A stretch of 36,905 nt of DNA from Octopus sinensis (Eukaryota): assembly GCF_006345805.1 (NCBI RefSeq), contig NW_021831682.1:1-36905 (forward strand). Reading direction: 5' to 3'. Shown here one piece after another: positions 4,064-24,869 of the stretch. The notes beneath the pieces are model-generated. The model ran no database searches, had not been told where the DNA came from, and saw only the letters and a program-made list of their open reading frames with translations. A program made the position numbers and the translations under genes. Positions within the stretch are counted from its first letter, which is position 1, and each line of letters starts with the position of its first letter.

Positions 4064-4350
4064 GACTAGATTATATTAAAAAAATAACAGCATGGGTCGC
4101 CAAAATAAATATAAAAAATAATTCAGAAAGTTTTAAGTAATATATATTTTATGTTGCAATATACAGTGCCTGAAAAAAATTGGATTTGAAATAAATCGAC
4201 TTTTTTTAAAGTAAAGTTGTTTCTTAACTTCCTCACGAATGCTTATTAGAAATCAAACTTTCAGAAATTTGGAATGTGCTGACAAAAAATTCCAGGAAAA
4301 AAGAACGTCTAAAAATCAATATAAAAAACTAGATTTTTGTCTGTTCGGAA

Positions 4351-4960
4351 ATGTTAACGACGTTTTATTTATTTATTATATTTCACATGGTCTTAGCTGG
4401 AGGAATTAGAGAGAATCCATTATGTAAATTTGTATTAGTAAAATATAGTTACATCGCGAGGGGATACCGGATTACATATTAATGAGAGAGGTTTAATCTA
4501 AAAGTAATTTTAAATAGAATTTACGAAACAAGTTGAAGAAATTTTGCGAACTAATTATGGAATTGCTCAATTTCGACCGAATTTAGAGATCACAGTATTC
4601 TTTTATTTATTTTTTGCAAAGAAACAAAACAATTTAGAACAGGAATTCGCTGATCTTATGAAAAGTGACACTATATTAGATATTATGAACACATATTATA
4701 ATTCACCTGGACATCAAGCTCTAGTCTCGCTTATTTTCGAGATATTCGGCATAACACTGACAACTACAACAGAGGCAACTACAACAACCACAACAGAAGC
4801 ATCGACAACTACAACAGAGGCAGCGAAATTGCCTACGATAAAGGCAGCGAAATCGCATACAACAGAGAAAGTGAAATGTACTACAGCGAGACAATCGCCT
4901 AAAACAGATAAGTACCTATTCATACTAACTAATATTATTTACTTTTTGGAATTTTACTAA
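4351..4960 (+). CDS. Secreted Thr-rich (mucin-like) orphan protein, copy 1, 4 exons, ~175 aa
   Basis: ATG at 4351 gives signal-peptide-like MLTTFYLFIIFHMVLA. GT-AG introns 4424-4448, 4491-4517 and 4595-4621 give one open frame through TTTTEA repeats to a hydrophobic C-terminus KYLFILTNIIYFLEFY*. An extra intron at the very 3' end cannot be excluded. Confidence 0.7.
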
Positions 4961-5424
4961 TTTAATTTAACGCGATGTTTTGTGATAAAACTATTTATCA
5001 GTTTATTTTATTTAAGAAACATATAAGAGATTAATTTTTGATGCTGTTGATTTCTTATTTTTTTGATCTATTATTATTAATAAGCGCACCTTCAAAACAA
5101 CCTAAATAAAGTTTTTTCGCCATTCTGAATGTGTTTTGTTAATCTCTTCCATTTCACTTTGTTCCTCGACAGTTTTCTCAGAACTCGATGTCGTCTGCCT
5201 ATGTCAGCCCTTTTCCAATCAAGGTTAAGTCTTGATGTAGAAAGGTTAGTAGAGTAAGTAAAGTAAGATCGGTTTTACGAAAATTAGAGGCAGTCTTCCT
5301 CGAGTATTTTTATCCATCAGCATTTAAAAACATAATTTTATCAACAATAATTCGTATTATTCAAAAAAATTTTGTTAAATTATTTATTAACATTTTTTTC
5401 TTGTGGGCACATTTTTGTTATTAA

Positions 5425-6216
5425 ATGGCTATCGAAGATCTATTTAGCAATGCTCAGCTATTATCAGTAATTGGAGAACATGATCTATATGACCAGAATA
5501 TAAAAACAAAAATAAACGAATGGACACATTTGGGGGATACTACAGTCCCTACAAATATACAAAATAGTTGATTACGTAACCTAATGACTAGTAATATCCT
5601 TTAGCAGGCGTTATTCATTGATATTTTGCTGTGGAATACTTATAACCGAACTAAATACTTTATTTTTAGCCTCTCTTCACGAATTACTACACGCTGGAGG
5701 AGTCCTTTTATTCATTTTCGAGAAATCAAATGATTTATTGGACTCAAAACTAATCAGATTACTCAAGATTGCTGGTTTTTTCTCACCAATAGACGTACAA
5801 TAATATTTATAAACATACAGCAATCAAATGAACTCGACTCCTCATTCATCACTGTCCAGAAGGCGAGTTTTGCCAATGGGACATCAATATCGAATATTTG
5901 GAGTGACATTGACTACGAGGAAGAGGGAGAGACGATCAACAGTGATGAGATATTGGAAGAGCAAGACAAACTGCCTCCTGTGAGGATCAGTTACACAGCA
6001 AAACAGAAGAGGAGAGCATGTGCGAATTGTACGTGTGGATTGGATGTTTCGGAGGGTGTGATGAGGTCTTCTTGTGGGAATGTATTTGTGTGGTTATAGT
6101 AGTAGTGCTATCTCGGAGATGCATTTCGATGTGATGGTTGTCCTTACAGTGGTCTGCCCCCCTTCAACCCTGGAGATGTGGTTGAGATTCCCGATACTGA
6201 TTTGTTTGATCTATAA
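5425..6216 (+). CDS. CIAPIN1: Anamorsin / Dre2 (cytosolic Fe-S assembly), copy 1, 4 exons
   Basis: Three GT-AG introns of 24-26 nt (first 5567-5591) give an open frame ending ...[12 protein letters not shown]...SSCGN|[24 protein letters not shown]..., the family signature. Confidence 0.93.
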
Positions 6217-6481
6217 TCCAGTTAAAATTATTTTGTGTCAAAAAACGTGTTTCTGGCCTGATTTTTTATTGACCCCTCTAATATTTAATCGACCCTCTTA
6301 AAAAATTTTATATACAACAGACAATATTAAATAATATTTATATATACCAGACAAAACTAAGTAAAATTAGTTACTTTCCAGTATTTAATCAAACGAATAT
6401 TTATAGCCATAGTCAGAGGCAATACTCTGGCAATCTGCCAATGACCATTTTTCTGTAGTCCTTTTATTAATACATGATAAT

Positions 6482-7953
6482 TAGGGCAACTAAAAAGTTG
6501 ACCTAAAAATTTAAAAATTGACCTCTAAAAGTCAACTAAATTGACCCAAAAAAACGAAAGTTGACCTAAAAAGAGCCAAGAATTTTTTTTAATCAGGAGT
6601 TATAAAGAATCATATAAAATTTAAGGTTCTCCGGTTTAAAATTCCGATCTTTTGCCAAAATTTTATGGAGAATTGAAAATGAACGCTCCACAGAACATGT
6701 AGTTGCCTGACATTGAAGTAGTCGCAACTTTTCCATAGGCGAAAAATTTTCTTCGTTAACAATTTTCATAATTTCATTCTTATTCATTCTTTTATCAATA
6801 TATTCTTTTATTTTGCAGGTATCTTCTTTCAGATCGAGTATTTTCAAAAAATTGATAGCCTTCTCGATTGAAAAGTTTGTGGACTCAATTTCAGGAAGAA
6901 CATCTGCAAGTGGAGAATACTGATTCCATATTTCTTTTAAATCATTAACAAGTCCTTCATGGTTTATTGATTCTTTTGCCCTCCGAATCAATAGGGATTC
7001 TCCTTTTAACGAATTGCATATTTCCAACACTCTGGAAAAATGTTCCACGTAGTACTTGGTTGCTCGAAGCCAACTTCCCCATCTAGTAACAATAGGTTCT
7101 GGAGGTAGTCCTATTTCAGAAAATAGTTGCCTTCGACTACTGTTTTTGAGAACAAGTTCTTTAATGGAGGCAATTAAGTTATCCACTGTAGGGTAACTTA
7201 GTTTTATCCTTAAAGCACAATTTTGTATCAAATGTGCAATGCATGTTACGTGGAATAGGTAAGGGTACAAATTTTCAGAGTGTTTCCTGCTGAAATCATT
7301 TACTTTGCCGCGTCGGTTAACAACAAGTAAAAATTTTTCCTTTCAATATTTGCATGTCGGATCGTATCGTCCACAATCTGGCATACAATTGATGCGTTCG
7401 GCGAAGAATTTAATACAATACAATCAATAAGATAACTGTTTTGGGGATCAGTTATTTTCCCAATAAGAATATTGACAAATTTATCTTTACCGGCATCAGA
7501 CTCATCAACAATTAAGAAAATCCTTTCATTAATTAACAATTGGATAATCTCACTAACACGTCTTTCTGCCAAAATTTTGACATTGTTTGACATTTTGATT
7601 CTGAAGGTAACACAAATCCAATAGTATTAAAAAAATTTATTAAGGCAGGATTCCGTAATTTATATAATGGAATATTTGCTGAAACAAATGCTTTAGTTAG
7701 ATTGAGCGAAAAATCATTAGTAACAACAGTAGTGGGAAAAAACCTTTGAATGGTCTTTTTAGGCTCGTTCATATGCGATTTATGTTTTTGCGTCAATCTG
7801 TGTTTTTCTACAAACCATTTTTTATGGAATGTAAAAAATTAATATTTATATATTTTAAATAAATATTTTAAGCAGAAAATTACAAATTGACAAAAAATAC
7901 AAAAATTGACAAAGTTGACCAAAAGTTGACATTATTGACTTTTGGTTGCCCTA
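6482..7953 (-). mobile_element. hAT DNA transposon (defective), copy 1
   Basis: TIRs tagggcaac / gttgcccta, exact 8-bp TSD atgataat (6474-6481 and 7954-7961), subterminal A[A/G]TTGAC repeats. The transposase is split into ORFs 7533-7796, 7300-7593 and 6593-7270 by two frameshifts and a TAA; VDESD and CSVERSFS motifs present. Confidence 0.93.
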
Positions 7954-8025
7954 ATGATAATCATTTTTACCAACTATCTAAATTCATTATTAATAATCAA
8001 ACAAAACTCAATGAAAAAACTCGAT

Positions 8026-8953
8026 AGTCAAAATTTTTAAAACATCTAGGCATTTTTGGTTTTCCAATCATCACAGGTTTCAATTTATGACTTCCGGTCA
8101 TGTTTGAACAAAGCATAATAGACACACGGTCTTTAAAATTTTTGTATCCTTGGAATCGGTTTCTGCATACGCTTTTCGATGGAATAAGCTTGTAGTATAA
8201 TGCAGTTTCATCCAAATTATAAATTAGATCAGGCTTATACGATTTAGAAATTTCTTTAAATTCTTCACGAAAAGAATTAATGTCAACTACTTTATCTGTT
8301 CGCATCTCTCCATGTAATTTTAGCATTCTAAAACCGTGTCTCTTTTTGAATTTTGCCAGAAATCCATTAGAATTTTTAAAGTTACTAAGTTGTAGCTCTT
8401 CGGCAAAATGCGCAGCCTTACACGATATTAAGGAATCATTCAAAAAACCACCTAAAAATTGGTTTTCAATTAATACCTTTAGACTCTATTGTATCCATCC
8501 ATTCGATCAATTTTTCTTCAAGCGTAGGAAATTTTGGTTTGTGAGCAGCTTTATACGAATTTTGATAGATTTTCGAATCCCGTAAAATAGAGTCTTTATT
8601 AAGCAGTAGATTATTGATCGTCTTTCTCGAGATCGTCTTGTGGAATAAATGTGAGAATCTGTCAGCCAGAAGCTGACACGAAACACTGTCATTTTCTTCC
8701 TTGTAGTTTATAATTTGTGTTTTTTCAAGAAAAGTGAGCCGAGTATAACGTCCACGAGAAATTTTATAAGACATGTGATTAAAAAAATAGTTTATTTTCT
8801 AATTAAAAAAAATAATAATTCAAAAATTGTGGCCAATTTGAGAATTGGCCAATTTACTAAGAAAATTAATTTTTTTCTTAGTAAATTGTGCAAAAATTGG
8901 CCAATTTAAAAATTGGCCAATTTGCGAGGTGGCCAATTTGCGAGGATTCACTG
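8026..8953 (-). mobile_element. 5' half of a pogo/Tigger (Tc1/mariner) element with a 25-nt intron
   Basis: TIR cagtgaatcctcgcaaattggcc next to TA (8954-8955), with repeated palindromic ttggccaa subterminal motifs. HTH_psq and CENP-B HTH, then DDE_1 start (NLDETALY...KDRVSIMLCSN...KPVMIGK). ORFs 8466-8774 and 7997-8443 join in frame through GT-AG intron 8452-8476. Confidence 0.88.
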
Positions 8954-9215
8954 TATAAAAAATAATTCAGAAAGTTTTAAGTAATATATATTTTATGTTG
9001 CAATATACAGTGCCTGAAAAAAATTGGATTTGAAATAAATCGACTTTTTTTAAAGTCAACTTGTTTCTTAACTTCCTCACAAATGCTTATTAGAAATTAT
9101 ACTTTCAGAAATTTGGGATGTACTGACAAAAAATTCCAGGAAAAAAGAACGTCGAAACAATTGAATATAAAAAACTAGACTAATTTAATTCAACGCGATA
9201 TTTTGTCTGTTCGAA

Positions 9216-9780
9216 ATGTTAACGACGTGTTATTTATTTATTATATTTCACATGGTCTTAGCTGGAGGAATTAGAGATAATCCATTTTGTAAATTTGTAT
9301 TAGTAAAATATAGTTACATCGCGAGGGGATACCGGATTACATATTAATGAGAGAGGTTTAATCTAAAAGTAATTTTAAATAGAATTTACGAAACAAGTTG
9401 AAGAAATTTTGCGAACTAATTATGGAATTGCTCAATTTCGACAGAATTTAGAGACCATAGTATTCTTTTATTTATTTTTTGCAAAGAAACAATACAAGTT
9501 AGAACAGGAATTCGCTGATCTTATGAAAAGTGACGCTATATTAAATATTACGGACAAATATTATAATTCACCTGGACATCAAACTCTAGTCTTGCTTATT
9601 TTCGAGATATTCGGCATAACAGTGACAACTACAACAGAGGCAACTACAACAACTACAACAGAGGCAGCGAAATCGCCTACAAAAGAGAAAGTGAAATGTC
9701 CTACAGCGAGACAATCGCCTAAAACAGATAAGTACCTATTCATATTAACTAATATTATTTACTTTTTGGAATTTTACTAA
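9216..9780 (+). CDS. Secreted Thr-rich orphan protein, copy 2 (stalk 15 aa shorter)
   Basis: Same exon structure as copy 1 with identical intron sequences; open frame MLTTCYLFIIFHMVLAGGIRDNPF...KYLFILTNIIYFLEFY*. Confidence 0.7.
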
Positions 9781-10267
9781 TTTAATTCAACGCGATGTTT
9801 TGTGATAAAACTATTTATCAGTTTATTTTATTTAAGAAACATATACTCGGTGATCTAATTTTTAATGCTGTTGATTTCTTATTTTTTTGATCTATTATTA
9901 TTAATAAGCGCACCTTCAAAACAACCTAAATAAAGTTTTTTCGCCATTCTGAATGCGTTTTGTTAATCTCTTCCATTTCACTTTGTTCCTCGACAGTTTT
10001 CTCAGAACTCGATGTCGTCTGCCTATGTCAGCCCTTTTCCAATCAAGGTTAAGTCTTGATGTAGAAGGGTTGGTAGAGTAAGTAAAGTAAGATCGGTTTT
10101 ACGAAAATTAGAGGCAGTCTTCCTCGAGTATTTTTATCCATCAGCATTTAAAAACATAATTTTATCAACAATAATTTGTATTATTCAAAAAAATTATTAA
10201 AAAATATTTTGTATTTTGTTAAATTATTTATTAACATTTTTTTCTTGTGGGCACATTTTGTTATTAA

Positions 10268-11059
10268 ATGGCTATCGAAGATCTATTCAACAATGCTCAG
10301 CTATTATCAGTAATTGGAGAACATGATCTATATGACCACAATATAAAGACAAAAATAAACGAATGGACACATTTGGGGGATACTACTGTCCCTACAAATA
10401 TACAAAATAGTTGATTACATAACCTAATGACTAGTAATATCTTCTAGCAGGCGTTATTCATTGATATTTTGCTGTGGAATACTTATAACCGAACTAAATA
10501 CTTTATTTTTAGCCTCTCTTCACGAATTACTACACGCTGGAGGAGTCCTTTTATTCATTTTCGAGAAATCAAATGATTTATTGGACACAAAACTAATCAG
10601 ATTACTCAAGATTGCTGGTTTTTTCTCACCAATAGACGTACAATAATATTTATAAACATACAGCAATCAAATGAACTCGACTCCTCATTCATCACTGTCC
10701 AGAAGGCGAGTTTTGCCAATGGAACATCAATATCGAATATTTGGAGTGACATTGACTACGAGGAAGAGGGAGAGACGATCAACAGTGATGAGATATTGGA
10801 AGAGCAAGACAAACTGCCTCCTGTGAGGATCAGTTACACAGCAAAACAGAAGAGGAGAGCATGTGCGAATTGTACGTGTGGATTGGATGTTTCGGAGGGT
10901 GTGATGAGGTCTTCTTGTGGGAATGTATTTGTGTGGTTATAGTAGTAGTGCTATCTCGGAGATGCATTTCGATGTGATGGTTGTCCTTACAGTGGTCTGC
11001 CCCCCTTCAACCCGGGGGATGTGGTTGAGATTCCCGATACTGATTTGTTTGATCTATAA
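10268..11059 (+). CDS. CIAPIN1: Anamorsin / Dre2, copy 2, intact
   Basis: Same model as copy 1 with an open frame; 4 amino-acid differences counted. Confidence 0.92.
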
Positions 11060-11339
11060 TCCAGTTAAAATCATTTTGTGTCAAAAAACGTGTTTCTGGC
11101 CTGATTTTTTATTCGTTGATTTTTTATTGACCCCTCTAATATTTAATCGACCCTCTTAAAAAATTTTATATACAACAGACAATATTAAATAATATTTCTA
11201 TATACCAGACAAAACTAAGTAAAATTAGTTACTTTCCAGTATTTAATCAAACGAATATTTATAGCCATAGTCAGAGGCAATACTCTGGCAATCTGCCAAT
11301 GACCATTTTTCTGTAGTCCTTTTATTAATACATGATAAT

Positions 11340-12824
11340 TAGGGCAATTAAAAAGTTGACCTAAAAATTTAAAAATTGACCTCTAAAAGTCAACTAAATT
11401 GACCCAAAAAAACGAAAATTGACCAAAAAGTTGACCTAAAAAGAGCCAAGAATTTTTTTTAAATCAGGAGTTATAAAGAATCATATAAAATTTAAGGTTC
11501 TCCGGTTTAAAATTCCGATCTTTTGCCAAAATTTTATGGAGAATTGAAAATGAACGCTCCACAGAACATGTAGTTGCCTGACATTGAAGTAGTCGCAACT
11601 TTTCCATAGGCGAAAAATTTTCTTCGTTAACAATTTTCATAATTTCATTCTTATTCATTCTTTTATCAATATATTCTTTTATTTTGCAGGTATCTTCTTT
11701 CAGATCGAGTATTTTCAAAAAATTGATAGCCTTCTCGATTGAAAAGTTTGTGGACTCAATTTCAGGAAGAACATCTGCAAGTGGAGAATACTGATTCCAT
11801 ATTTCTTTTAAATCATTAACAAGTCCTTCATGGTTTATTGATTCTTTTGCCCTCCGAATCAATAGGGATTCTCCTTTTAACGAATTGCATATTTCCAACA
11901 CTCTGGGAAAATGTTCCACGTAGTACTTGGTTGCTCGAAGCCAACTTCCCCATCTAGTAACAATAGGTTCTGGAGGTAGTCCTATTTCAGAAAATAGTTG
12001 CCTTCGACTACTGTTTTTGAGAACAAGTTCTTTAATGGAGGCAATTAAGTTATCCACTGTAGGGTAACTTAGTTTTATCCTTAAAGCACAATTTTGTATC
12101 AAATGTGCAATGCATGTTACGTGGAATAGGTAAGGGTACAAATTTTCAGAGTGTTTACTGCTGAAATCATGTACTTTGCCGCGTCGGTTAACAACAAGTA
12201 AAAATTTTTCCTTTCAATATTTGCATGTCGGATCGTATCGTCCACAATCTGGCATACAATTGATGCGTTCGGCGAAGAATTTAATACAATACAATCAATA
12301 AGATAACTGTTTTGGGGATCAGTTATTTTCCCAATAAGAATATTGACAAATTTATCTTTACCGGCATCAGACTCATCAACAATTAAAAAAATCCTTTCAT
12401 TAATTAACAATTGGATAATCTCACTAACACGTCTTTCTGCCAAAATTTTGACATTGTTTGACATTTTGATTCTGAAGATAACACAAATCCAATAGTATTA
12501 AAAAAATTTATTAAGGCAGGATTCCGTAATTTATATAATGGAATATTTGCTGAAACAAATGCTTTAGTTAGATTGAGCGAAAAATCATTAGTAACAACAG
12601 TAGTGGGAAAAAACCTTTGAGGGGTCTTTTTAGGCTCGTTCATATGCGATTTATGTTTTTGCGTCAATCTGTGTTTTTCTACAAACCATTTTTTATGGAA
12701 TGTAAAAAATTAATATTTATATATTTTAAATAAATATTTTAAGCAGAAAATTACAAATTGACAAAAAATACAAAAATTGACAAAGTTGACCAAAAGTTGA
12801 CATTATTGACTTTTGGTTGCCCTA
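11340..12824 (-). mobile_element. hAT DNA transposon (defective), copy 2
   Basis: Same TIRs and TSD atgataat (11332-11339 and 12825-12832). It shares both frameshifts with copy 1 but has TAC where copy 1 has TAA. Confidence 0.93.
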
Positions 12825-13143
12825 ATGATAATCATTTTTACCAACTATCTAAATTCATTATTAATAATCAAACAAAACTCAATGAAAAAACTCGATGTTA
12901 AGTTAGTCGATAGTCAAAAAAACTCGATAATCAAAATTTTTGACAATCATTTTCTGTATCGAATTTGATTTTCCGTTTGGTTGTCTCACGTGGTTGGGGT
13001 TAGAGGGTCTGATTAAAGGCAATGGACGCGGAGGGTTGGTCTAAGGTGGCTGACTTGGAGGGTTAAAAGATGTGTGGTTAAAGTGAGAGGTGCTGACCAC
13101 AACATTCCAACAGTATTAAATACAAAGATAGCGTTTTAGTGAA

Positions 13144-15593
13144 ATGTTTAATGTATTTCCACACATAAAACTCACTTGATTTAGATTTTTAAAAAGAAAT
13201 CAAAAAATAAACCACTGAAAACGAATTTGGAATTAAATGAACAAAATTTTGACAAAATAAAAGAATTGTGCCTACAAAACAACGCCCTGTTCCAAGACCC
13301 GGACTTTCCTGCAGACGATTCATCTCTATTTTATAACAAAACAATCCAAGGACAAGTCAGGTGGGTCCGTCCGACAGTAAGTCTCACTCAATTATGACAG
13401 GAAATTGTCCCGAATCCCAATTTCATAGTCGACGGAGCCTCGAGATTTGACATTGTTCAGGGCTCTCTGGGTGAATTGGCATAAAATAAATTGCCAGGTG
13501 ATTGCTGGATGTTGGCAGCAGTGGCAGTCCTCACTACTGACCCACGCCTGTTTGCCAAAGTGGTCCCAATGGAGCAGACCTTCGAAGAAAGTGAGTACTT
13601 TGGAGCATTTCGATTCATGTTCTGGCACTTTGGAGAATTTAAACAAGTGGTGGTGGACGACAGACTTCCTACCCTCAACGGTGAACTCATATTTATGCAA
13701 TCCGCACAAAAAGACGAATTCTGGTCTGCCCTTTTAGAGAAAGCCTACGCCAAGTCAGTCCCTCTGACCATCCCAGAATGTGTGGCTGCTACCAAGCCCT
13801 CGAGGGAGGCTCAGCCTTGGAAGCCCTCATTGACTTTACAGGCGGAGTCGGAGAGAGATTTGACCTATCAAGAACCTCCTCTAAACTATTTTCCCAACTC
13901 AACTCAGCCCTTCTAAGACAATCCTTAATGTCCTGTGCCATAATAGTATTCTCACATATACAAATCAGGGCAACACTTTGGAGGGCAAACTAGCCAATGG
14001 CCTAATCATGTTACACGCCTATTCATTGACAGGACTTGTAGAGGTTATTCCACTCATATAAAATAGGTGACCCTCACTAGACTGGGACAACAAGTCCAGT
14101 TGGTCAGATTGCGGAATCCGTGGGGACAGGTTGAGTGGAATGGTCCGTGGAGTGATGGGTCACCCGAATGGGGACTCGTCTCTCCCACGGAAAAAAACCA
14201 ACTTGATCTTGTCTGTCAAAATGACGGAGAATTCTGGTCGGGTTTTCCGTGATTTGTAGGATGGATTGGAAAGATTTTACTTCCAACTACTCCATTGTCG
14301 AGGTATGCAACCTCCAGCCAGATTCCGTCACGGATTCCGTGATCGACCAGTGGAAGGTGACACAATTCGAAGGGTCCTGGGTCAAATTTGTCACCGCGGC
14401 GGGAAATATTAAGTCAAGTAATTTTTTTTGGTTATTTTTGAATCTTATTTGTCAAATCCCACGTTTTTGTTTCAAGTTGGAGAGACTCAGCAGAGGACCA
14501 CGGAAGTTCTCATTTCGGTCTCTCAGAAAGACCGGAGGAGACTCTTTGCCCAAGGGAAGTCAATGTTGGCCATTGCTTTCCACGTTTTTGAGGTATTTTT
14601 TTAATTATATGAGAATTTTGGCGGGAAAAAACGCCTAGTTGGGAGTTCTGGTCCCTACAGTAATAAAAGGGAAATATCTCAGAGATTTGAACTCAGGGCT
14701 GGGAGTTATTCCCTTATAGTCTCCACATATGAGCCCAATATTCCCGGGGAATTTTTAGTGAGGATCTTCAGTGAGACGGAGACCACAGAAGTGTATAAAT
14801 ATAAACAATTTATTTAATTAATATTTAAAAATAATTAATTAATATTTTTAAATATATTATTTTAGTGAGGAACAAGTTGATCAAGTGGTGAGTCCTTGTC
14901 ATATTATTGCCCAAGGACCCCATCAATGATACTGAGGACGTCGATTCAATGTTCAGGGAGGCTGCCGGTGCTGACATGGAAATACAAACTAATGATCTTT
15001 ACAAATTATTGAACAAAGAAACAACTATAGGTTTAATTAATTATACAATTACTTAATAAATTATAAAATAATTAATTAAATAATAAAATAGGTAAAAATG
15101 AGTTCTCGTGGAGAAACACTGCACAATTGATTTCACTATACGACGTTGGTATTATACGTTGACTCATAGACCGATGGGACCGGTTCTCTCGGCCTGGAGG
15201 AATTTCGAGACCTTTGGATCAGAATTACTCAAGCCAGGGTATGCCTTATCCCACTAATAAAGACAATCTTCAAAGAGGCTGACTCTGACAATTCAGGCAC
15301 ACTAAGCACATTCGAACTGAGGAGAGCAATCCGCCGTACAGGCAGCAGAATAAGCAACAGGACGACAATGTCTTTGGTACTGAAACACTCTGATGAGAAT
15401 GGCCTGTTCTCGTTGGACGATTTTGTGGTGTGTGTTGTCAAAATAAACAGAGCTGCTGGTTTATTCTTTCCTGGCATTCTTTCTAGTAATTTTCAGACGA
15501 CAAGCCAAGTCCTCGCTTGTGGCCACATTTACACTAGAAAGGGTAGGTGGTTGGTTTATTTGTTAGTTTATTGACGATGTGTGTTCTCTTTAA
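13144..15593 (+). CDS. Classical calpain (CysPc, C2-like domain III, penta-EF hand), ~17 exons
   Basis: Spliced model has QGSLGDCW (Cys), HAYS (His) and LRNPWG (Asn), domain III motifs ([31 protein letters not shown]) and EF hands ([26 protein letters not shown]). Most introns are 21-32 nt; stop TAA at 15591-15593. Paralogue not assignable. Confidence 0.95.
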
Positions 15594-15691: not shown

Positions 15692-18435
15692 ATGGAGACC
15701 GAATTGATATTCATGAAAGAAGACGCTCTAATGAAATTAGGCTTACTTTTTGTAAAAAAATAAGAAAATAATAAATAAAAGGACGACACAGACATTCCCT
15801 TTGAAGAAGAACTAATCCGGAATCCTTTTTCAGTAAAAATATGGCTGAGATACATCGAGCACAAAGAGGACTCCAACCCAGAGACTTTGTACATCCTCTA
15901 TGAACGGGCCCTCAAAGAGCTTCCAGGAAGGTAAACCCCGGGAAACCACCTCAGCTATAAAATATGGATCCACTACCTCAATTTCCGAACAGAACGAACC
16001 AAATTGTTGTGTGTGAACAGTCCAGAGTATCAGAAACTAAACGAATTGTACGAAAGAGCCCTCATACTTATGGGGAAAGTAATACAAGCCAGGATTACTT
16101 GATAGATGCCCAGAATATGGCTTAACTACCTCGATTTGCTTATCCACGAAGGACTGATCACTCGGACTAGGCGGACATTCGACCGATGCCTCATATCCCT
16201 GCCCATAACACAGCACAAAAGAATGTGGCATCACTTGATTGGGTTTATAAAGCAATGTAATGTTCCACTGACTACTTTTAAATTGTTTAAACGCTATTTA
16301 AAAGTATTGAGGTGTGATGTTCTATTGTTAGATCAAGTGGGACTGTGCAGAAGATGTGGTTGTTTACTATAGGAGTGTGGGGTACTACAATGATGCTGCT
16401 AAACTGCTTATGGATATCATCAATGACCAGAGATTTGTCTCAAAACATGGCAAATCAAAATATCAGGTGACACACATGAGTTTAAATTCAAATTATATAT
16501 TTAAAATTAATTAAATATATTATTAATTTAATAAATGTTAAGTTGTGGGGTGATTTATGTGAGTTGATGGTGAAGCACGTGGATATAACATCGATAGACG
16601 TGGATGGGATAATAAGACAGGGAATAGACCAGCACAGTGACCAGACAGGCGTGTTGTGGAACTCCCTGGTGGAGTACTACACTCGGAATGGGCAGTTCGA
16701 TAAGGCGAGGGATGTCTATGAGGAGGCAATGGTCAAAGTGAAGACAGTGTGTGACTTTACCCAAATATATGAGGGATATGCCCACTTTGAGGAGTCCCTC
16801 ACATCTGCAGCCATTGAACAGCTGGGAGAGGAGGCCACAGAAGAGGGTTGGTTGTCTTTAATAGGCAGAAATACTCGACGTGGAGTACTGTGCAGCCAGA
16901 TATGAGTATTTGATAGAACGGAGGGCAATCATGTTGAACAGGCAGGCCTCTTTGCTTATTCCCAGTGTCAAAATCAGACAAAACCCTCACAACGTGGAGA
17001 ACTGGCAGCAGAGGGCACTCCTGGCTGCGGAGAGGGAGGATCCTGTGGGGGTAGTGGAGGTGTACACGGAGGCACTCCACACAATTAATAACGAAATAGC
17101 AGTGGGCAAACCACATTCACTGTGGGTGGCCTTCGCATTGTTTTATGAAAAGGCGGGAAATATAATACAAGTATTTTTTCGCGCCATTTTTAAATAGGCG
17201 CGGAATGTATTTGAAAAGGCGATTGAGGTGGAGTTTAGTTGTGTGGAGGATTTGGCGAGTGTTTGGAGTGAGTGGATAGAGATGGAGATTCGACAGGAGT
17301 TGGGATATTCCCTCTACCCTTAGAAACATCCCCCAGGCATTCGACCTCCTCAAGAAAGTGACCAGTCCCCCCAAAAACAGAAGACATGTGTCATATTTCG
17401 ACAAATCCCACTCGATCCACAGCCGAGTGCACAAGTCTCTCAAACTGTGGTCACTCTATGCTGACTTGGAAGAGAGTTTCGGCTGCTTTGAGGGACAGTC
17501 GATAGTAAATTGTAGAAATGCAGAGCAGTGTATGACAGCATCCTCGACCTGAGAATAGCCACCCCTCAGTTGATAATGAACTACGCCCTGTTTATGGAGG
17601 AACACAAATATTTCGAGCAGTCATATCAGGTGGTGGGAGTGATGGACAGGCAGGTATTCGAGAGGGGGATTGGGCTGTTTGGGTGGCCAGTGGTGGTCGA
17701 CCTGTGGAATTCGTATCTGTCCAAGTTCATAGGGCGATATGTGAGGGATGGAAATGACAATTGCAGGGGGGAGACAAACTGGAGAGATGTCGGGACTTGT
17801 TTGAGCAGTGTTTGGAGGACTGTCCTCCCCAATACGCCCAACGTAGGCCAGTGTGATAAGAATAGACTTTTATACAATGTACGGGCAGATGGAGGAGGAC
17901 CACGGACTGAGGAGACATGCCATGGCAATCTACCAACGAGCCACGGAATGTGTGCCAATGGAGACCAAAATGAAGGTGTAGGTCATAGTGAGTCCCAGAT
18001 GTTCAAACATTACATATCACGTGCCTCCGAGTGGTTTGGAATGACGAGTGTGCGAGGAATATACGAGAAGGCCATCCAAGTGTTGGGTGATGGGGACAGT
18101 CGGTCAGTCTGGGGTGTCATTTGTAGAGAAATGAGTATTGCCTTTGCCAAATTGGAGGAGAAGTTGGGGGAAATGGAGAGAGCCAGAGTCATCTACAGTC
18201 ATTGCTCTCAGTTCTGTGACCCTGCGGTATTCCGAGGTGTTCAGTTTAGGTGGATGACGAGTTCTGGTCGTTGTGGTCACAGTTTGAGTTGCACTATGGC
18301 AATGAGGACACCATTCGGGAGATGTTGAGGGTCAAACGATCAGTCCAGGCCTTCTACAACACGGCAGTCATGCGCCCTATTGAGCCCACTCATCCCATGG
18401 AGATTGCCCAGGCCAATCAAAGTGGGGTTGTCTGA
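15692..18435 (+). CDS. XAB2: Pre-mRNA splicing factor SYF1 / XAB2 (HAT repeats), ~17 exons
   Basis: Spliced model follows XAB2 throughout: [87 protein letters not shown]. Confidence 0.96.
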
Positions 18436-20420: not shown

Positions 20421-21025
20421 TTAATTATCGCATACGTCCTCGCTTTTTTCAACTTGGTTACTTATTTCAATTTCTGGGTTGCTTGAAATGTCTATTACAG
20501 TTATTTTAAAATAAAAACCCAAAATTTCACACAAAAATGGTAATTTATCATTACAACTCTGATCATTCCAGACTCCTCTAGGAATCCATATCTCAACACA
20601 GTTTTCAATTTGATAATTATTAGGTTCATTTGTATTCCAATTAAAAAAGGCCTGAATTTAAAAAGTTTGAATTACTTGTTTATTTCCATAAGAATCCAAA
20701 AACTCGTTTTCTTTCTGGATGTCATTTACTCCAATCCAAAACCTTGATTTTGCGTTTTTTATAAAATTTTCTGAAATAAATTATTTTTGTGTTTACCGTA
20801 AATATAATTATTTGTGATTTGGCTGTCTATATTTGCGAGTGAGCCTTTTTTTTCTTTACAAACTTTTTGTGCATCTTGTCGATTTAGTCTATCCGTCACA
20901 AAAATATAACATTTTCCATTAAAACATTCTAAACTGAAATAAAATGAATTACTGTTCGATGTTGGAGCACTTTGCACAAAAATTGATAGAATTAGAAAAT
21001 AGAACATTTTAATTATTATTCTCAT
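20421..21025 (-). CDS. Secreted C-type lectin (EPN/WND type)
   Basis: Signal peptide, C-x-I-F...C, FWIGVND, WNTNEPNN, ENCVE, WNDQSC and FLCE after splicing GT-AG introns 20771-20796, 20652-20675 and 20492-20518. The 3' end is uncertain (possible further donor at GAC|GTATGC). Confidence 0.88.
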
Positions 21026-21335
21026 TTTCTTCCAGTATTTAAATCAAATTTTTAATTAATTGTCATATTGTCAAGCAATTATGTTTTTATAAATCATTTA
21101 TGTTTTTTAAAACTGTAATTACTGTTTTTATCTTCATTTCTGTTATTTCTGTTATATACTATTACTTATTTATTTTTTTAGAAATTAGTTTCAGTATTTG
21201 TAAAACAGTCCAAAATGTGAGCATATAGCAGTGATGACAACAAGAAAATCATGTATTTTATTTTAATATAATTTTTCAAATAAAAAACAAACAATTTTCT
21301 AAACGATTTATCATGATCAAGGACTTGTTTAAATA

Positions 21336-21418: not shown

Positions 21419-22584
21419 TTCGGAAAGTAATTTTTAATATTTTAAAAAAAGAAGAACAGAATAGGCAACTGAGCTCAATTTAACTGTTTGGCAAATCACA
21501 ATTTGGTTCTAAAATAGAAGAATAAAATTTTGAAAACCGCAAAATACTTTGCAACCCAGAGTTTTAAAATTTTGATTTTATTAAGAAATTTTTGATATTC
21601 TAACTCATAAAAATATTATTTGATTTTGCAGGGCATGTCAAAATTAATTTATTTTGTTTTAGTTTTTTATAAACATAAAATGACTTTCAGAATAACATCA
21701 AAGGGAATGGAAATATAAAATATCATTTATCTTGGCGTGTTAAAGTCTACTATAATGACATTAGTATTGTATTAATATATCCGGACTCCCTCCTGATAGT
21801 CATGGAAAGGCTTATCTATAATTAAAAAAGTTGTAAATATTCAAAAATTTATAAGATAAAGGCAATCCACCAGGCTACGCATATATCGTAAACATAATAA
21901 TGAATATTTTTGATTAAAACTAACTTTATGACTGTATAAGATAAATAGATTTAAATTGTATCTAATTGAAAGTCGGTTAATTGCATAAATCGGTTAATGC
22001 CATAAATTTATGTTAAAAACAATAATTTATATGCTTTCCATTCAAAATATTAGGTTAATTGTATATCGGTTAATTGAATACTTTCATCGGAAACATTTAC
22101 TATTTTCGCATAACTGCATAATTATAATCTGTAATTTTAAATTGAAAATTTTCAATGTTTTATTCAAGGAAGTCAAACTCAGACAGTTTTATTTGTGAGA
22201 TTCAACTGATCACAGTCTCAAATTTCACGATTTTTAAGAATAGAGAAGAAATTATGTTATTGGCTGAATTTAATTGGGTAAATTAAGTCGCCAAAGCCGA
22301 CGCGATGGCAAAATATCGGATAACTGCATAAGATTTTTAATGGATAAATGTTATCTTTACTGTATATTACTTTTTGTAGTTTGTACTGACAGAGTTTTCA
22401 AATCACAAACGTCTAGACTGGCTCAGAAATGTGCAATGTTTACAAAAGGATTGGAGATGGTTGTTTTTATCAGGTTGATCACACCATGTCATCCAGGACT
22501 TTCATAATGGGGTCAATGCGGATATGAAATATATGTCAACTTAATTAATGAGGAATATATAACCAGGTAATGCAATATTCATCG

Positions 22585-24869
22585 ATGTATCCTTTACTGT
22601 TTGCATTATTTGTATGCACTGCATTCTCTTATGACCAGAAGTTGTCATTTGCTGGCCTTGTAATGCTATTATTTCACTCCTCTTTTAGCTACCACTACAG
22701 AAACACGTGCAAAAGGTATTTGGGATAAACAACTGGTTATTTAGAGAGAAGAAATGACACTCTCCGAAGATGTATTATTCTTAATCCCACTACAATTATA
22801 GAGACTCGAGGGACTGATAAATGTGGAATGGGTAAGGAATACGTTTATATTTATATTAGAACATTGTAGTGGAGTGGACAGAACAAAGATATGTAAGCCC
22901 AGTAGTACAATAATATTCAGGACACTAAATTGAGCATATTTGATAAAGTATTAAGGATTGTGATATATTATAGGACAAAATACTTACTTCTCTCCGAGAG
23001 GTAATGCTTGTTTGATAATGAGTAGTACTCTGATGAATATGTGTCCCGACGGTATTAGTGCTTATTATTAATTTATAGCTTCAATCGCATTCCCAGCATT
23101 CCAGGTGAATTTGCTGTTATTACTATTTATAGATTCATACTATAGTTGCTCGTGCCACTGACGCATTGTAGTGCTCATTAGAAACGTTAAAACCACCACT
23201 CCGCCAACCCCGCCCACCCCGACGACACCCAGCACTCCGAGCACGATGCCAAAAGGTTATATTGAATAAAACTATTGTTAGAGAATATAGTAAAACAAGC
23301 CGAAATAAAGTTAAAGGATGAAAGGAACAAGACAAAAGTGATATATAGATCTGTGTATATTAGATTATACAAATCATGGATGATCTGACTAGAACGAACA
23401 ACGTGGAGGAACAAGATATATCCACGTACATTATTCGCGTAAACAGCAGGTTTCACAAACTATGTGAAGAACCCACCGAAAATACCGCGAACTTTGAACT
23501 TTCGAATGAAAAAATACGCATAATAGACAAAACTGTGGCAAGCACATTATCATATGAATTGGAGGAACAAGATATTCAATGCGAGCTCACGTTTGATACA
23601 GAAACAGACATCCACGGTGCATTTTAGATTTATTCCTCTCAGTGAGAACTGTTTACTGGAATGACACGATAACTTTTAAATCCAAAAAGCCCCAAATTTT
23701 GGGCTCGAAGGTTTTCTCAGTAAGTTTGCGAGCTGAAACAGAGTTAAAAGTCAAAATTACATTTCCAGTGAGTCCCACATTTATATTGCTTAGACTAATC
23801 GGACTAACTTGACTTGCGCATATTTTGACGAGAACAATTCGGAGTGGATTACGACTGGGGGGACGACGCTGTTTACTAATGCGGGGGTTGTCTGCGTATT
23901 CAATCACCTGACAAGCTTTGCCGTGATCTTTGTTGCTCCTTGATTGCTGACAACGCAGAGACCAGAACTCCTGAATGTGAAAAGTCCAGTCAAGTTGTAC
24001 ATAAACAGCATACTGCTCGCAATCTCTACATTTTTGATATTTTTTTCAATTATGATATTTATGACGAATATAAAGTATATTTGCTGGTACCACTCGCTAG
24101 AATACAAATCAAGTCGACCTTCCAACTGGCACTGCTTCATTTTGAATTCTCGATGGTAATTGTAAACATTACATTTCTTTCCATACTACAAAACTCGGAG
24201 AACGAGGGAGTGACTGCGTGCACAGCCAAAGGAGTTGTCCTCCATTTCGGACTTTTGGCACAATTTCTGTGGATGCTGGCAGAGACGTACATCCATTATA
24301 TTAAATTTGTCAAAGTCATCGGCATCACCATCAACAAAATAATCACCAAAGCAGTCGTGCTAAATTGGGGTTCTCATGCATTTGACCACTCGCAGGCATT
24401 CCATTGTGTATTGTGGGGACGATCGCTCTTGTTGACTCGCGTGTGTATTACAACGAAGGAAAGTAAGGGATTCTATTTGAGTGGGCAGATGTCTGATATC
24501 GGGTGTGGGACTGTATACAGGCCTGGTGCTTCCCTGTGCTGCAATCGCGTTGGTCAATCTCATCTTGTTTGTCATTATTGGACTTCACATAAAAAAGGCT
24601 CGAGTAGAAAATTCAAAGCAGATGTTTCAGGAGAACAGAATATTGGCATTGTTGGCATTCTCCTCTGGTTTGCCGGTTGTGCTATTCCAGGATTACCGTG
24701 GTTCGTATACTTCTTTGTCCAATTCGACACGACTGGGACATTGGACTACATTGCCAGTCCTGTTATTTGTCTCACTGGGGCCATCGTTGTTATCCTCAAT
24801 TTGATGACCCGGCCAAAGACGACAGTCCAAAATAAGACTATTCGCCAGAAAGTCTTTTCATATTTCTAA
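22585..24869 (+). CDS. Adhesion GPCR: signal peptide, micro-exon ectodomain, Pro/Thr linker, GAIN/GPS, 7TM
   Basis: One stop-free frame across ~19 GT-AG introns of 23-30 nt. Signal peptide MYPLLFALFVCTAFS, GPS CAYF...W...C.FNHL|TSFAVIF, family-2 7TM motifs (CTAKGVVLHFGLLAQFLWMLAE, LNWGIP, GLPW); stop TAA at 24867-24869. Confidence 0.88.

Follow-up and report, generated by a model that had tools for sequence, protein, structure and literature searches.

A dense run of predicted micro-exons opens an adhesion-type receptor gene on a putatively foreign contig of the octopus genome assembly

The ectodomains of adhesion G protein-coupled receptors (GPCRs) are often diversified through alternative splicing. 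Two other described systems bear on the locus considered here, namely the micro-exon genes (MEGs) of schistosomes and the ultra-short introns of certain animals. Introns of ~26 nt have been reported among animals only for dicyemids and myxobolid myxozoans (PMC13644364). For dicyemids, the literature gives a median intron length of 27 bp, 4.9–6.2 introns in each gene and exons averaging 198 bp (PMC6543705, PMC6736024), with about two thirds of the introns shorter than 30 nt (PMC6543705). Here, we describe a gene at positions 22585–24869 on the plus strand of a 36,905-nt contig of the Octopus sinensis assembly (the window, that is, the whole stretch of DNA analysed), in which an exon for a putative signal peptide is followed by a train of exons of 12–33 nt separated by introns of 25–30 nt, and then by the coding sequence of a seven-transmembrane (7TM) receptor. 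The micro-exon pattern is real and far beyond chance. On balance, we favour reading the locus as a functional adhesion-type GPCR gene of a tiny-intron animal, most likely a dicyemid, whose micro-exon-dense 5′ end would encode a mostly constitutive tip.

The gene model comprises 19 GT-AG introns in 1,764 coding nt, of which 12 lie within the first 450 nt, and its spliced product is an open frame of 587 amino acids (aa) starting at the ATG at 22585. Exons 1–12 (E1–E12) measure 75, 27, 27, 30, 33, 27, 27, 26, 26, 12, 84 and 56 nt, and the introns that follow them (I1–I12) 29, 29, 30, 28, 28, 26, 25, 27, 28, 27, 26 and 26 nt, whereas introns 13–19 (26, 26, 27, 26, 26, 26 and 35 nt) carry the frame to the stop at 24869. 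Thus, 18 of the 19 introns fall within 25–30 nt, the remaining one being the 35-nt intron, and the train has an exon-plus-intron period of ~56 bp. E2–E10 contribute 235 nt (13%) and E2–E12 375 nt (21%) of the coding sequence. The six consecutive exons E2–E7 have lengths divisible by three (3n) and are all of phase 0-0, whereas E8 (phase 0 to 2) and E9 (phase 2 to 1), 26 nt each, are not symmetric. Seven consecutive introns at the 5′ end are in phase 0, as opposed to a mixed three out of seven in the remainder of the gene, and this phase-0 run is non-random. The extension of the model past E10 was worked out from a three-frame print-out of the region. When spliced, the region reproduced exactly the exon and intron coordinates, lengths and phases given in a preliminary description of this DNA. 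Its further statements held as well: all of I1–I12 are GT-AG introns of 25–30 nt, a single stop-free frame reaches the GPS and 7TM parts (587 aa, with Pfam GPS and 7tm_2 matches), a plain list of open reading frames (ORFs) shows nothing of the structure, and an in-frame 27-nt GT-AG candidate is present inside exon 1.

To recognise such trains, we used a chain detector that accepts GTR...YAG introns of 24–31 nt with stop-free exons of 9–40 nt between them and a carried frame. In the region it returned a chain of 11, which corresponds to ten introns of the model (I1–I9 and a 37-nt variant of I10 ending at an AG 10 nt inside E11) and the candidate within exon 1. The longest chain in 2,000 dinucleotide-preserving shuffles of the region was 5, and the rest of the 36.9-kb window contained, on both strands, no other chain of 4 or more. 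A chain of 4 on another contig, C8294 (about 42910–43095, minus strand), looks like chance. It should be noted that a stop-free frame alone is weak evidence; naive maximum-ORF dynamic programming was discarded as a gene finder, for it kept the frame open past the real stop into junk and mis-spliced the calpain and SYF1 genes of the window. Nevertheless, all paths that use only 22–36-nt introns and are valid in both available copies of the gene (see below) need 10–14 introns, so that the train is independent of any single splice-site choice. Base composition differs between the two compartments, T making up 23% of the micro-exons and 41% of the introns (p=2e-5). A splice-site matrix trained on 17 other, trusted introns and scored against decoys placed the median of I1–I12 at about the 85th percentile of decoys, the same as for held-out true introns; as a ranker of single introns the matrix is too weak, in agreement with the reduced motifs described in PMC13644364. 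All four introns of 3n length contain an in-frame stop, and retention of any one of I1–I12 leads to a stop within 99 nt. Tandem duplication of a 56-bp unit was rejected as the origin of the train, because the pairwise similarities among micro-exons and among introns are no higher than in shuffles; the sole report of Tandem Repeats Finder in the region was a 9-nt Pro/Thr repeat.

A DNA search of the assembly recovered a 91%-identical copy on C8294 (37014–39545, compared with window positions 22585–24869) and near-identical copies on contigs C11947 and C9567. C8294 lacks the calpain gene that neighbours the receptor in the window as well as the 4 kb upstream of the receptor; it is therefore a non-syntenic, duplicated gene of about 2.6 kb and not merely an allele. 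Applied to this copy, the model of the window yields an open 598-aa frame in which 19 of 19 introns keep both GT and AG (38 dinucleotides). Small indels of +1, −1 and −3 nt are located in introns 3, 4 and 8, respectively, and the only exonic indel is an insertion of 33 nt in the Pro/Thr exon, by which the stalk differs by 11 residues. Substitutions affect 21 of 235 positions (8.9%) in the micro-exons E2–E10 versus 12 of 325 (3.7%) in introns 1–12 (p=0.011); in the 3′ half, the corresponding figures are 3.9% for exons and 1.0% (2/192) for introns 13–19. The pattern of substitutions and indels hence follows the exon/intron partition, which argues that the predicted introns are units under constraint, in the 5′ and the 3′ half of the gene alike. 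The tests described above and this comparison are individually weak but mutually independent, and since they point in the same direction, we rate it as very likely that the introns of the model are truly spliced.

Introns 13–19, with their two changes in 192 positions, are more conserved than the synonymous sites of the flanking exons (synonymous divergence, dS, about 0.11), which would imply strong constraint on nearly every base of the tiny introns. The contigs C11947 (~49978–50053) and C9567 are syntenic with the window and otherwise 100% identical to it, and both carry a 372-bp deletion equivalent to window positions 23187–23559. The deletion runs from the Pro/Thr exon into exon 13, displays microhomology at its breakpoints beside a repeated GGAGGAACAAGATAT motif and, under the gene model, causes a frameshift and an early stop; it could mark a null haplotype or else stem from a collapse in the assembly. 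Between about 23580 and 23740 the same two contigs have variants in common with C8294, suggesting recombination or gene conversion between copies. A further hit, on C9082 (~235249–235565), is a 310-nt receptor fragment from the TM3–TM5 region (TM, transmembrane segment) with ~90% DNA identity and a 14-nt deletion, isolated in unrelated sequence; it was ruled out as a close paralogue and is merely a relic of the gene.

The domain content of the spliced protein bears out the preliminary description, which had proposed an adhesion GPCR with an ectodomain encoded by a periodic micro-exon run. The putative signal peptide, MYPLLFALFVCTAFS↓YD, has a typical look, as judged by eye from the sequence. 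Pfam GPS is matched with 26.4 bits (cut-off 22.5; E 9.8e-6), the motif reading VCVFNHL↓TSFAVIF with the HL↓T cleavage consensus 17 residues before TM1. The 7tm_2 profile is matched with 55.4 bits (cut-off 20.6; E 6.8e-15) over profile positions 7–179 of 250, and TM6–7 were recognised by visual inspection of the open frame beyond the 35-nt intron. No GAIN match was obtained with Pfam on the spliced protein. The 88 residues encoded by exons 2–10 are charged and contain no Cys, and an HMM search of the spliced ectodomain, which the preliminary description had proposed, revealed no known domain in this part, with no Pfam match at E up to 1. By the domain features examined, the predicted product is an adhesion-type GPCR (class B2).

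The two parts of this protein evolve differently. Between the window and C8294, exons 13–20 have a nonsynonymous divergence (dN) of 0.021 and a dS of 0.109, and their ratio (omega) of 0.19 indicates a functional receptor. Exons 2–10 have accumulated 19.5 nonsynonymous versus 1.5 synonymous changes (omega 3.65, 21 changes), a value that differs clearly from that of exons 13–20 (p=1.4e-5) and only marginally from neutrality (p=0.05–0.15). Exons 6 and 7 are jointly 22% diverged, where synonymous sites diverge by about 11% (p=0.012). The micro-exon tip thus evolves at or above the neutral rate, whereas the 7TM part is under purifying selection. Variation demonstrated between the copies consists of substitution and of the length of the Pro/Thr stalk.

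The individual features of the model, all on the plus strand, are as follows. Exon 1 (22585–22659, phase 0-0) encodes the putative signal peptide and the residues after it (MYPLLFALFVCTAFS↓YDQKLSFAGL), with a hydrophobic core and an A-x-S site recognised by eye, and has one substitution in C8294. The in-frame 27-nt GT-AG candidate within it (22612–22638) scores at the 65th percentile of decoys; its splicing would delete the signal-peptide cleavage region, and it is therefore probably cryptic. An upstream in-frame ATG is found at 22570, but in C8294 it is followed by a stop, which identifies 22585 as the conserved start. Exon 2 (22689–22715; LPLQKHVQK) lies between intron 1 (22660–22688; GTAATG...TTTAG) and intron 2 (22716–22744), both of which preserve GT and AG in C8294. 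Exon 3 (22745–22771; REEMTLSED) is followed by intron 3 (22772–22801), which is of 3n length, includes an in-frame TAG and holds the +1-nt indel of C8294. Exon 4 (22802–22831; RLEGLINVEW), substituted at 3 of 30 nt in C8294, precedes intron 4 (22832–22859), where the −1-nt indel is located. Exon 5 (22860–22892; NIVVEWTEQRY) is followed by intron 5 (22893–22920), which scores at the 98th percentile of decoys. Exon 4 ends in the peptide motif NVEW, and exon 5, on the other side of intron 4, has a version of it, IVVEW, near its start (22817–22877); this recurrence may be the trace of a small internal duplication. Exon 6 (22921–22947; DTKLSIFDK) is the most diverged exon, with 7 of 27 nt differing from C8294, and exon 7 (22974–23000; DKILTSLRE) differs at 5 of 27 nt; intron 6 (22948–22973) separates them in the gene model.

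Downstream of intron 7 (23001–23025; gene model and splice matrix), exon 8 (23026–23051), intron 8 (23052–23078), which has a 3n length, includes an in-frame stop and is where C8294 has its −3-nt indel, and exon 9 (23079–23104) lead to intron 9 (23105–23132; gene model and splice matrix) and the 12-nt exon 10 (23133–23144). Confidence is lowest for exon 10, since the frame is also kept when a 67-nt intron (23105–23171) skips it. Intron 10 (23145–23171), again of 3n length with an in-frame stop, precedes exon 11 (23172–23255), which encodes the Pro/Thr-rich, mucin-like stalk, contains the 9-nt repeat at 23196–23221 and is the site of the in-frame 33-nt insertion in C8294. Intron 10 and intron 15 (23932–23958), both 27 nt long, each begin unusually, with GTTGCTC, and each contain a CTGAC resembling a branch point; this likeness may be due to chance or to a copied intron. 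Intron 11 (23256–23281), exon 12 (23282–23337; ENIVKQAEIKLKDERNKTK), which is unchanged in C8294, and intron 12 (23338–23363) complete the 5′ part of the gene model. Exons 13–15 (253, 125 and 138 nt), with introns 13 and 14 of 26 nt each, occupy 23364–23931 and encode the juxtamembrane ectodomain ending in the Pfam-matched GPS (omega 0.11 against C8294). The segment 23932–24869, with intron 15, exons 16–20 (116, 269, 67, 115 and 231 nt) and introns 16–19 (26, 26, 26 and 35 nt), encodes the 7TM part matched by 7tm_2 and ends with the stop (omega 0.30).

The window is the entire unplaced contig C8153 (NCBI NW_021831682.1) of a 2.72-Gb assembly (PMC12564688) of 13,516 contigs. Introns of its calpain gene (24, 27 and 23 nt) were verified by homology, as were those of its SYF1 gene, which are likewise tiny (the range for both genes is 23–27 nt) except for a single 76-nt intron. 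Ungapped homology across the junction of the latter confirms this one intron of the ~73–77-nt size noted in the preliminary description. The SYF1 protein of the window is only 46–48% identical to its best database matches, mostly from molluscs and other spiralians, and 46–59% identical to bivalve SYF1. A second SYF1, located on chromosome C1 (G000:C1:162123196-162155495), is 62–88% identical to bivalve SYF1 and extends over 32 kb with kb-sized introns. Two SYF1 genes of such unlike structure and divergence therefore point to two animals in one assembly. All relatives of the genes and repeats of the window were found on unplaced contigs. Judging from its genes, the contig is foreign DNA in the assembly of a mollusc, the octopus, apparently from a tiny-intron, parasite-like animal, a context that the preliminary description had missed. 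Dicyemids inhabit cephalopod kidneys. Dicyema japonicum has been isolated from Octopus sinensis (PMC6736024), and a dicyemid is the most likely source animal by its intron size, divergence and host. Introns of 25–30 nt thus appear to be the norm in the source genome, and what is unusual in the receptor gene is only the size of the exons and the density of the introns: elsewhere in the window, the shortest exons with homology support measure 63–70 nt, and introns at the 5′ end of the gene are about five times as dense as in the published average for dicyemids.

Several neighbouring genes belong to the same tiny-intron organism: calpain at 13185–14817 (+), the splicing factor SYF1/XAB2 at 15779–18430 (+) and a two-exon C-type lectin gene at 20421–21043 (−). 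The window further contains a 3.9-kb tandem segmental duplication (4110–8025 and 8954–12896, 95.4% identity), which carries an anamorsin/CIAPIN1-like exon (5734–6099 and 10577–10942, +) and a hAT-like transposase ORF (6593–7838 and 11464–12709, −); a fragment of a pogo/Tc5-type DDE transposase is located between the two copies (7997–8798, −). At 1670–2460, inside repetitive minus-strand ORFs, there is a tandem array with a period of ~95 nt and 87–90% identity between copies. Many unplaced contigs have repeats in common with the window.

The train appears to be confined to this gene. On other foreign contigs, nine receptor paralogues, 26–48% identical from GPS to TM7, were examined, and none has a train upstream; in about 0.19 Mb of non-redundant foreign sequence from related contigs, which is the extent covered by our estimate of prevalence, no train was found other than in copies of the receptor gene. 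The search for paralogues with such trains that the preliminary description had suggested thus came out negative on these nine loci and ~0.19 Mb, and the train is accordingly gene-specific. Octopus chromosome C10 (79.8–80.6 Mb) harbours over 40 clustered 7tm_2 genes that lack introns and have open frames of about 650–700 aa; no relation of this cluster to the receptor of the window was detected at E<=0.001. A literature search found no paper naming both Dicyema and micro-exons.

How could such a gene be expressed? We propose that its introns are actually spliced and would be recognised singly as ~26-nt units, that is, by intron definition, as elsewhere in the source genome. Under intron definition there is no lower bound on exon size of the kind that exon definition imposes, and exons of 12–33 nt would hence be tolerated. 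Inclusion of the exons would be mostly constitutive. The micro-exons would then encode a membrane-distal, Cys-free and fast-evolving tip without a known domain, carried on a Pro/Thr-rich, mucin-like stalk, variable in length, that separates it from the GPS and 7TM core; this tip might be the part that contacts a ligand or the host.

Several observations weigh against this reading. There are 33,360 alternative GT-AG paths (22–36-nt introns) from the ATG to exon 13. Splice motifs in this genome are weak, so that single introns are not individually certain; the scores of I1, I3 and I8 are close to the median of the decoys. The amino acids encoded by the micro-exons are not under purifying selection, as non-coding DNA would show too. 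A TATATAA element at 22556–22562 precedes the start codon by only 23 nt, which makes the true 5′ end unsure. A protein database search with the full spliced protein returned one match, 28% identical and from a brittle star, and no matching model or transcript-derived protein; the N-terminal 219 aa had no match in such a search, and neither did the spliced protein in exact-product look-ups. Finally, the source is identified as a dicyemid only indirectly, through the size of its introns, its sequence divergence and its host.

Some of these observations are what one would expect if the train were an artefact of chance GT...AG pairs in AT-rich DNA, the region being a 5′ untranslated region, a promoter or one long intron, with translation starting at the Met of exon 13 (23376) or with exon 1 joined directly to exon 13 (both phase 0). 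Naive searches do thread open chains through junk and tens of thousands of alternative paths exist; together with the weak motifs, the lack of purifying selection on micro-exon codons and the failure of protein searches to find a transcript-derived protein or annotated model, this gives the artefact some standing. Nonetheless, we consider it quite improbable: a chain of 11 stands against a maximum of 5 in the shuffles, no other chain in the window reaches 4, and the partition predicts substitution rates, indel placement and base composition in an independent copy. Moreover, a protein starting at 23376 would have no signal peptide and an ectodomain of about 190 aa, and joining exon 1 to exon 13 would require a 704-nt intron, extreme for the source genome. 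Still more remote is the idea that the gene is a decaying pseudogene whose odd 5′ structure has no function; although C11947 and C9567 carry the 372-bp frameshifting deletion and C9082 a 310-nt fragment, the frames of the window (587 aa) and of C8294 (598 aa) are fully open, with an omega of 0.19 in exons 13–20.

Somewhat less improbable, yet still unlikely in our estimation, is a diversification cassette resembling that of MEGs, in which the symmetric exons E2–E7, and the 12-nt E10, would be skipped combinatorially to produce a family of receptor tips, for which the preliminary description had counted up to 64 variants, in convergence with the schistosome genes. Six consecutive 3n exons (a chance of roughly (1/3)^6 for the lengths) and seven consecutive phase-0 introns, compared with mixed phases elsewhere, are what this idea leads one to expect. 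So are the placement of the signal-peptide exon before the micro-exons, as in MEGs, and the fast evolution of the tip (19.5 nonsynonymous to 1.5 synonymous changes), as reported for MEGs (PMC4350168). Skipping one exon would need introns of 78–89 nt, and the 76-nt intron of the neighbouring SYF1 is spliced. Conversely, both diverged copies retain the full set of twelve 5′ exons and have lost no splice site, the nine paralogous loci lack any such cassette, and the micro-exons show no detectable mutual similarity, hence no sign of a duplicated module. Furthermore, under intron definition, with introns mostly shorter than 30 nt (PMC6543705), pairing of the nearest sites would be strongly favoured over skipping. 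It is doubtful that a dicyemid, as a second parasitic spiralian lineage, independently evolved a micro-exon cassette, compacted to a period of 56 bp and placed on a signalling receptor instead of a secreted peptide, with skipping, rapid substitution and stalk length all varying the outer tip. A functional receptor gene with a largely constitutive micro-exon tip remains the reading we prefer.

If true, this series of spliced units, with exons of 12 nt and up and introns of 25–30 nt, would be denser than any other described in an animal, whether or not exons are skipped. Confirmation of the junctions by RNA would mean that exons and introns both far below the sizes usually deemed workable are handled ten times in succession, so that neighbouring spliceosomes would have to assemble within about 55 nt of each other or act strictly sequentially. 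The locus would then be a natural test case for spliceosome packing and for animal splicing by intron definition. Moreover, a MEG-like architecture would for the first time be known from outside the flatworms and from a receptor, with a bearing on the variation of parasite surface molecules. Standard gene finders and ORF tracks miss genes of such structure entirely. With a foreign contig inside the octopus assembly, gene counts and family expansions derived from this assembly need cleaning, and a scan of paralogues for trains is meaningful only on its foreign contigs.

For Paramecium, Jaillon et al. reportedly described in 2008 that introns of 3n length carry in-frame stops, so that mRNA surveillance catches their retention. 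The receptor gene resembles this ciliate tiny-intron rule in that its 3n introns contain in-frame stops in four of four cases, but four introns are far too few to demonstrate selection, and stops are frequent in AT-rich DNA. The likeness to schistosome MEGs that had been drawn in the preliminary description is partial. It extends to the signal-peptide exon followed by very short, mostly symmetric exons (the criterion being 6–81 nt and 3n, with which E2–E7 and E10 agree), to a lineage-specific, apparently fast-evolving part without a known domain, and to a parasite as the presumed owner. It does not extend to the long introns, the small secreted product or the micro-exon-dominated coding sequence of MEGs: MEG introns measure 0.1–5 kb, in contrast to 25–30 nt here, and MEG products are small, secreted and mostly encoded by micro-exons, which make up 13–21% of the coding sequence of the 7TM receptor (bioRxiv 10.1101/2023.06.21.545858; PMC4350168). 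E8 and E9, 26 nt each, are asymmetric, and the receptor gene has no sequence similarity to MEGs, in which skipping is documented, whereas here it is only a predicted possibility (bioRxiv 10.1101/2023.06.21.545858; PMC4350168). Unlike other adhesion GPCRs of class B2, the receptor has a tip without a recognisable adhesion domain and a very short region upstream of the GPS, but it shares with them a putative signal peptide, the variable ectodomain, the mucin-like stalk and the GPS with HL↓T followed by 7tm_2. Similarly, its 19 introns in 1.76 kb of coding sequence set it apart from dicyemid genes, which average 4.9–6.2 introns and 198-bp exons, whereas the introns themselves are of the kind described in dicyemids and myxobolids: GT-AG, with a mode of 26–27 nt and weak motifs, a description that fits the calpain, SYF1 and receptor genes of the window alike (PMC6736024, PMC6543705, PMC13644364).

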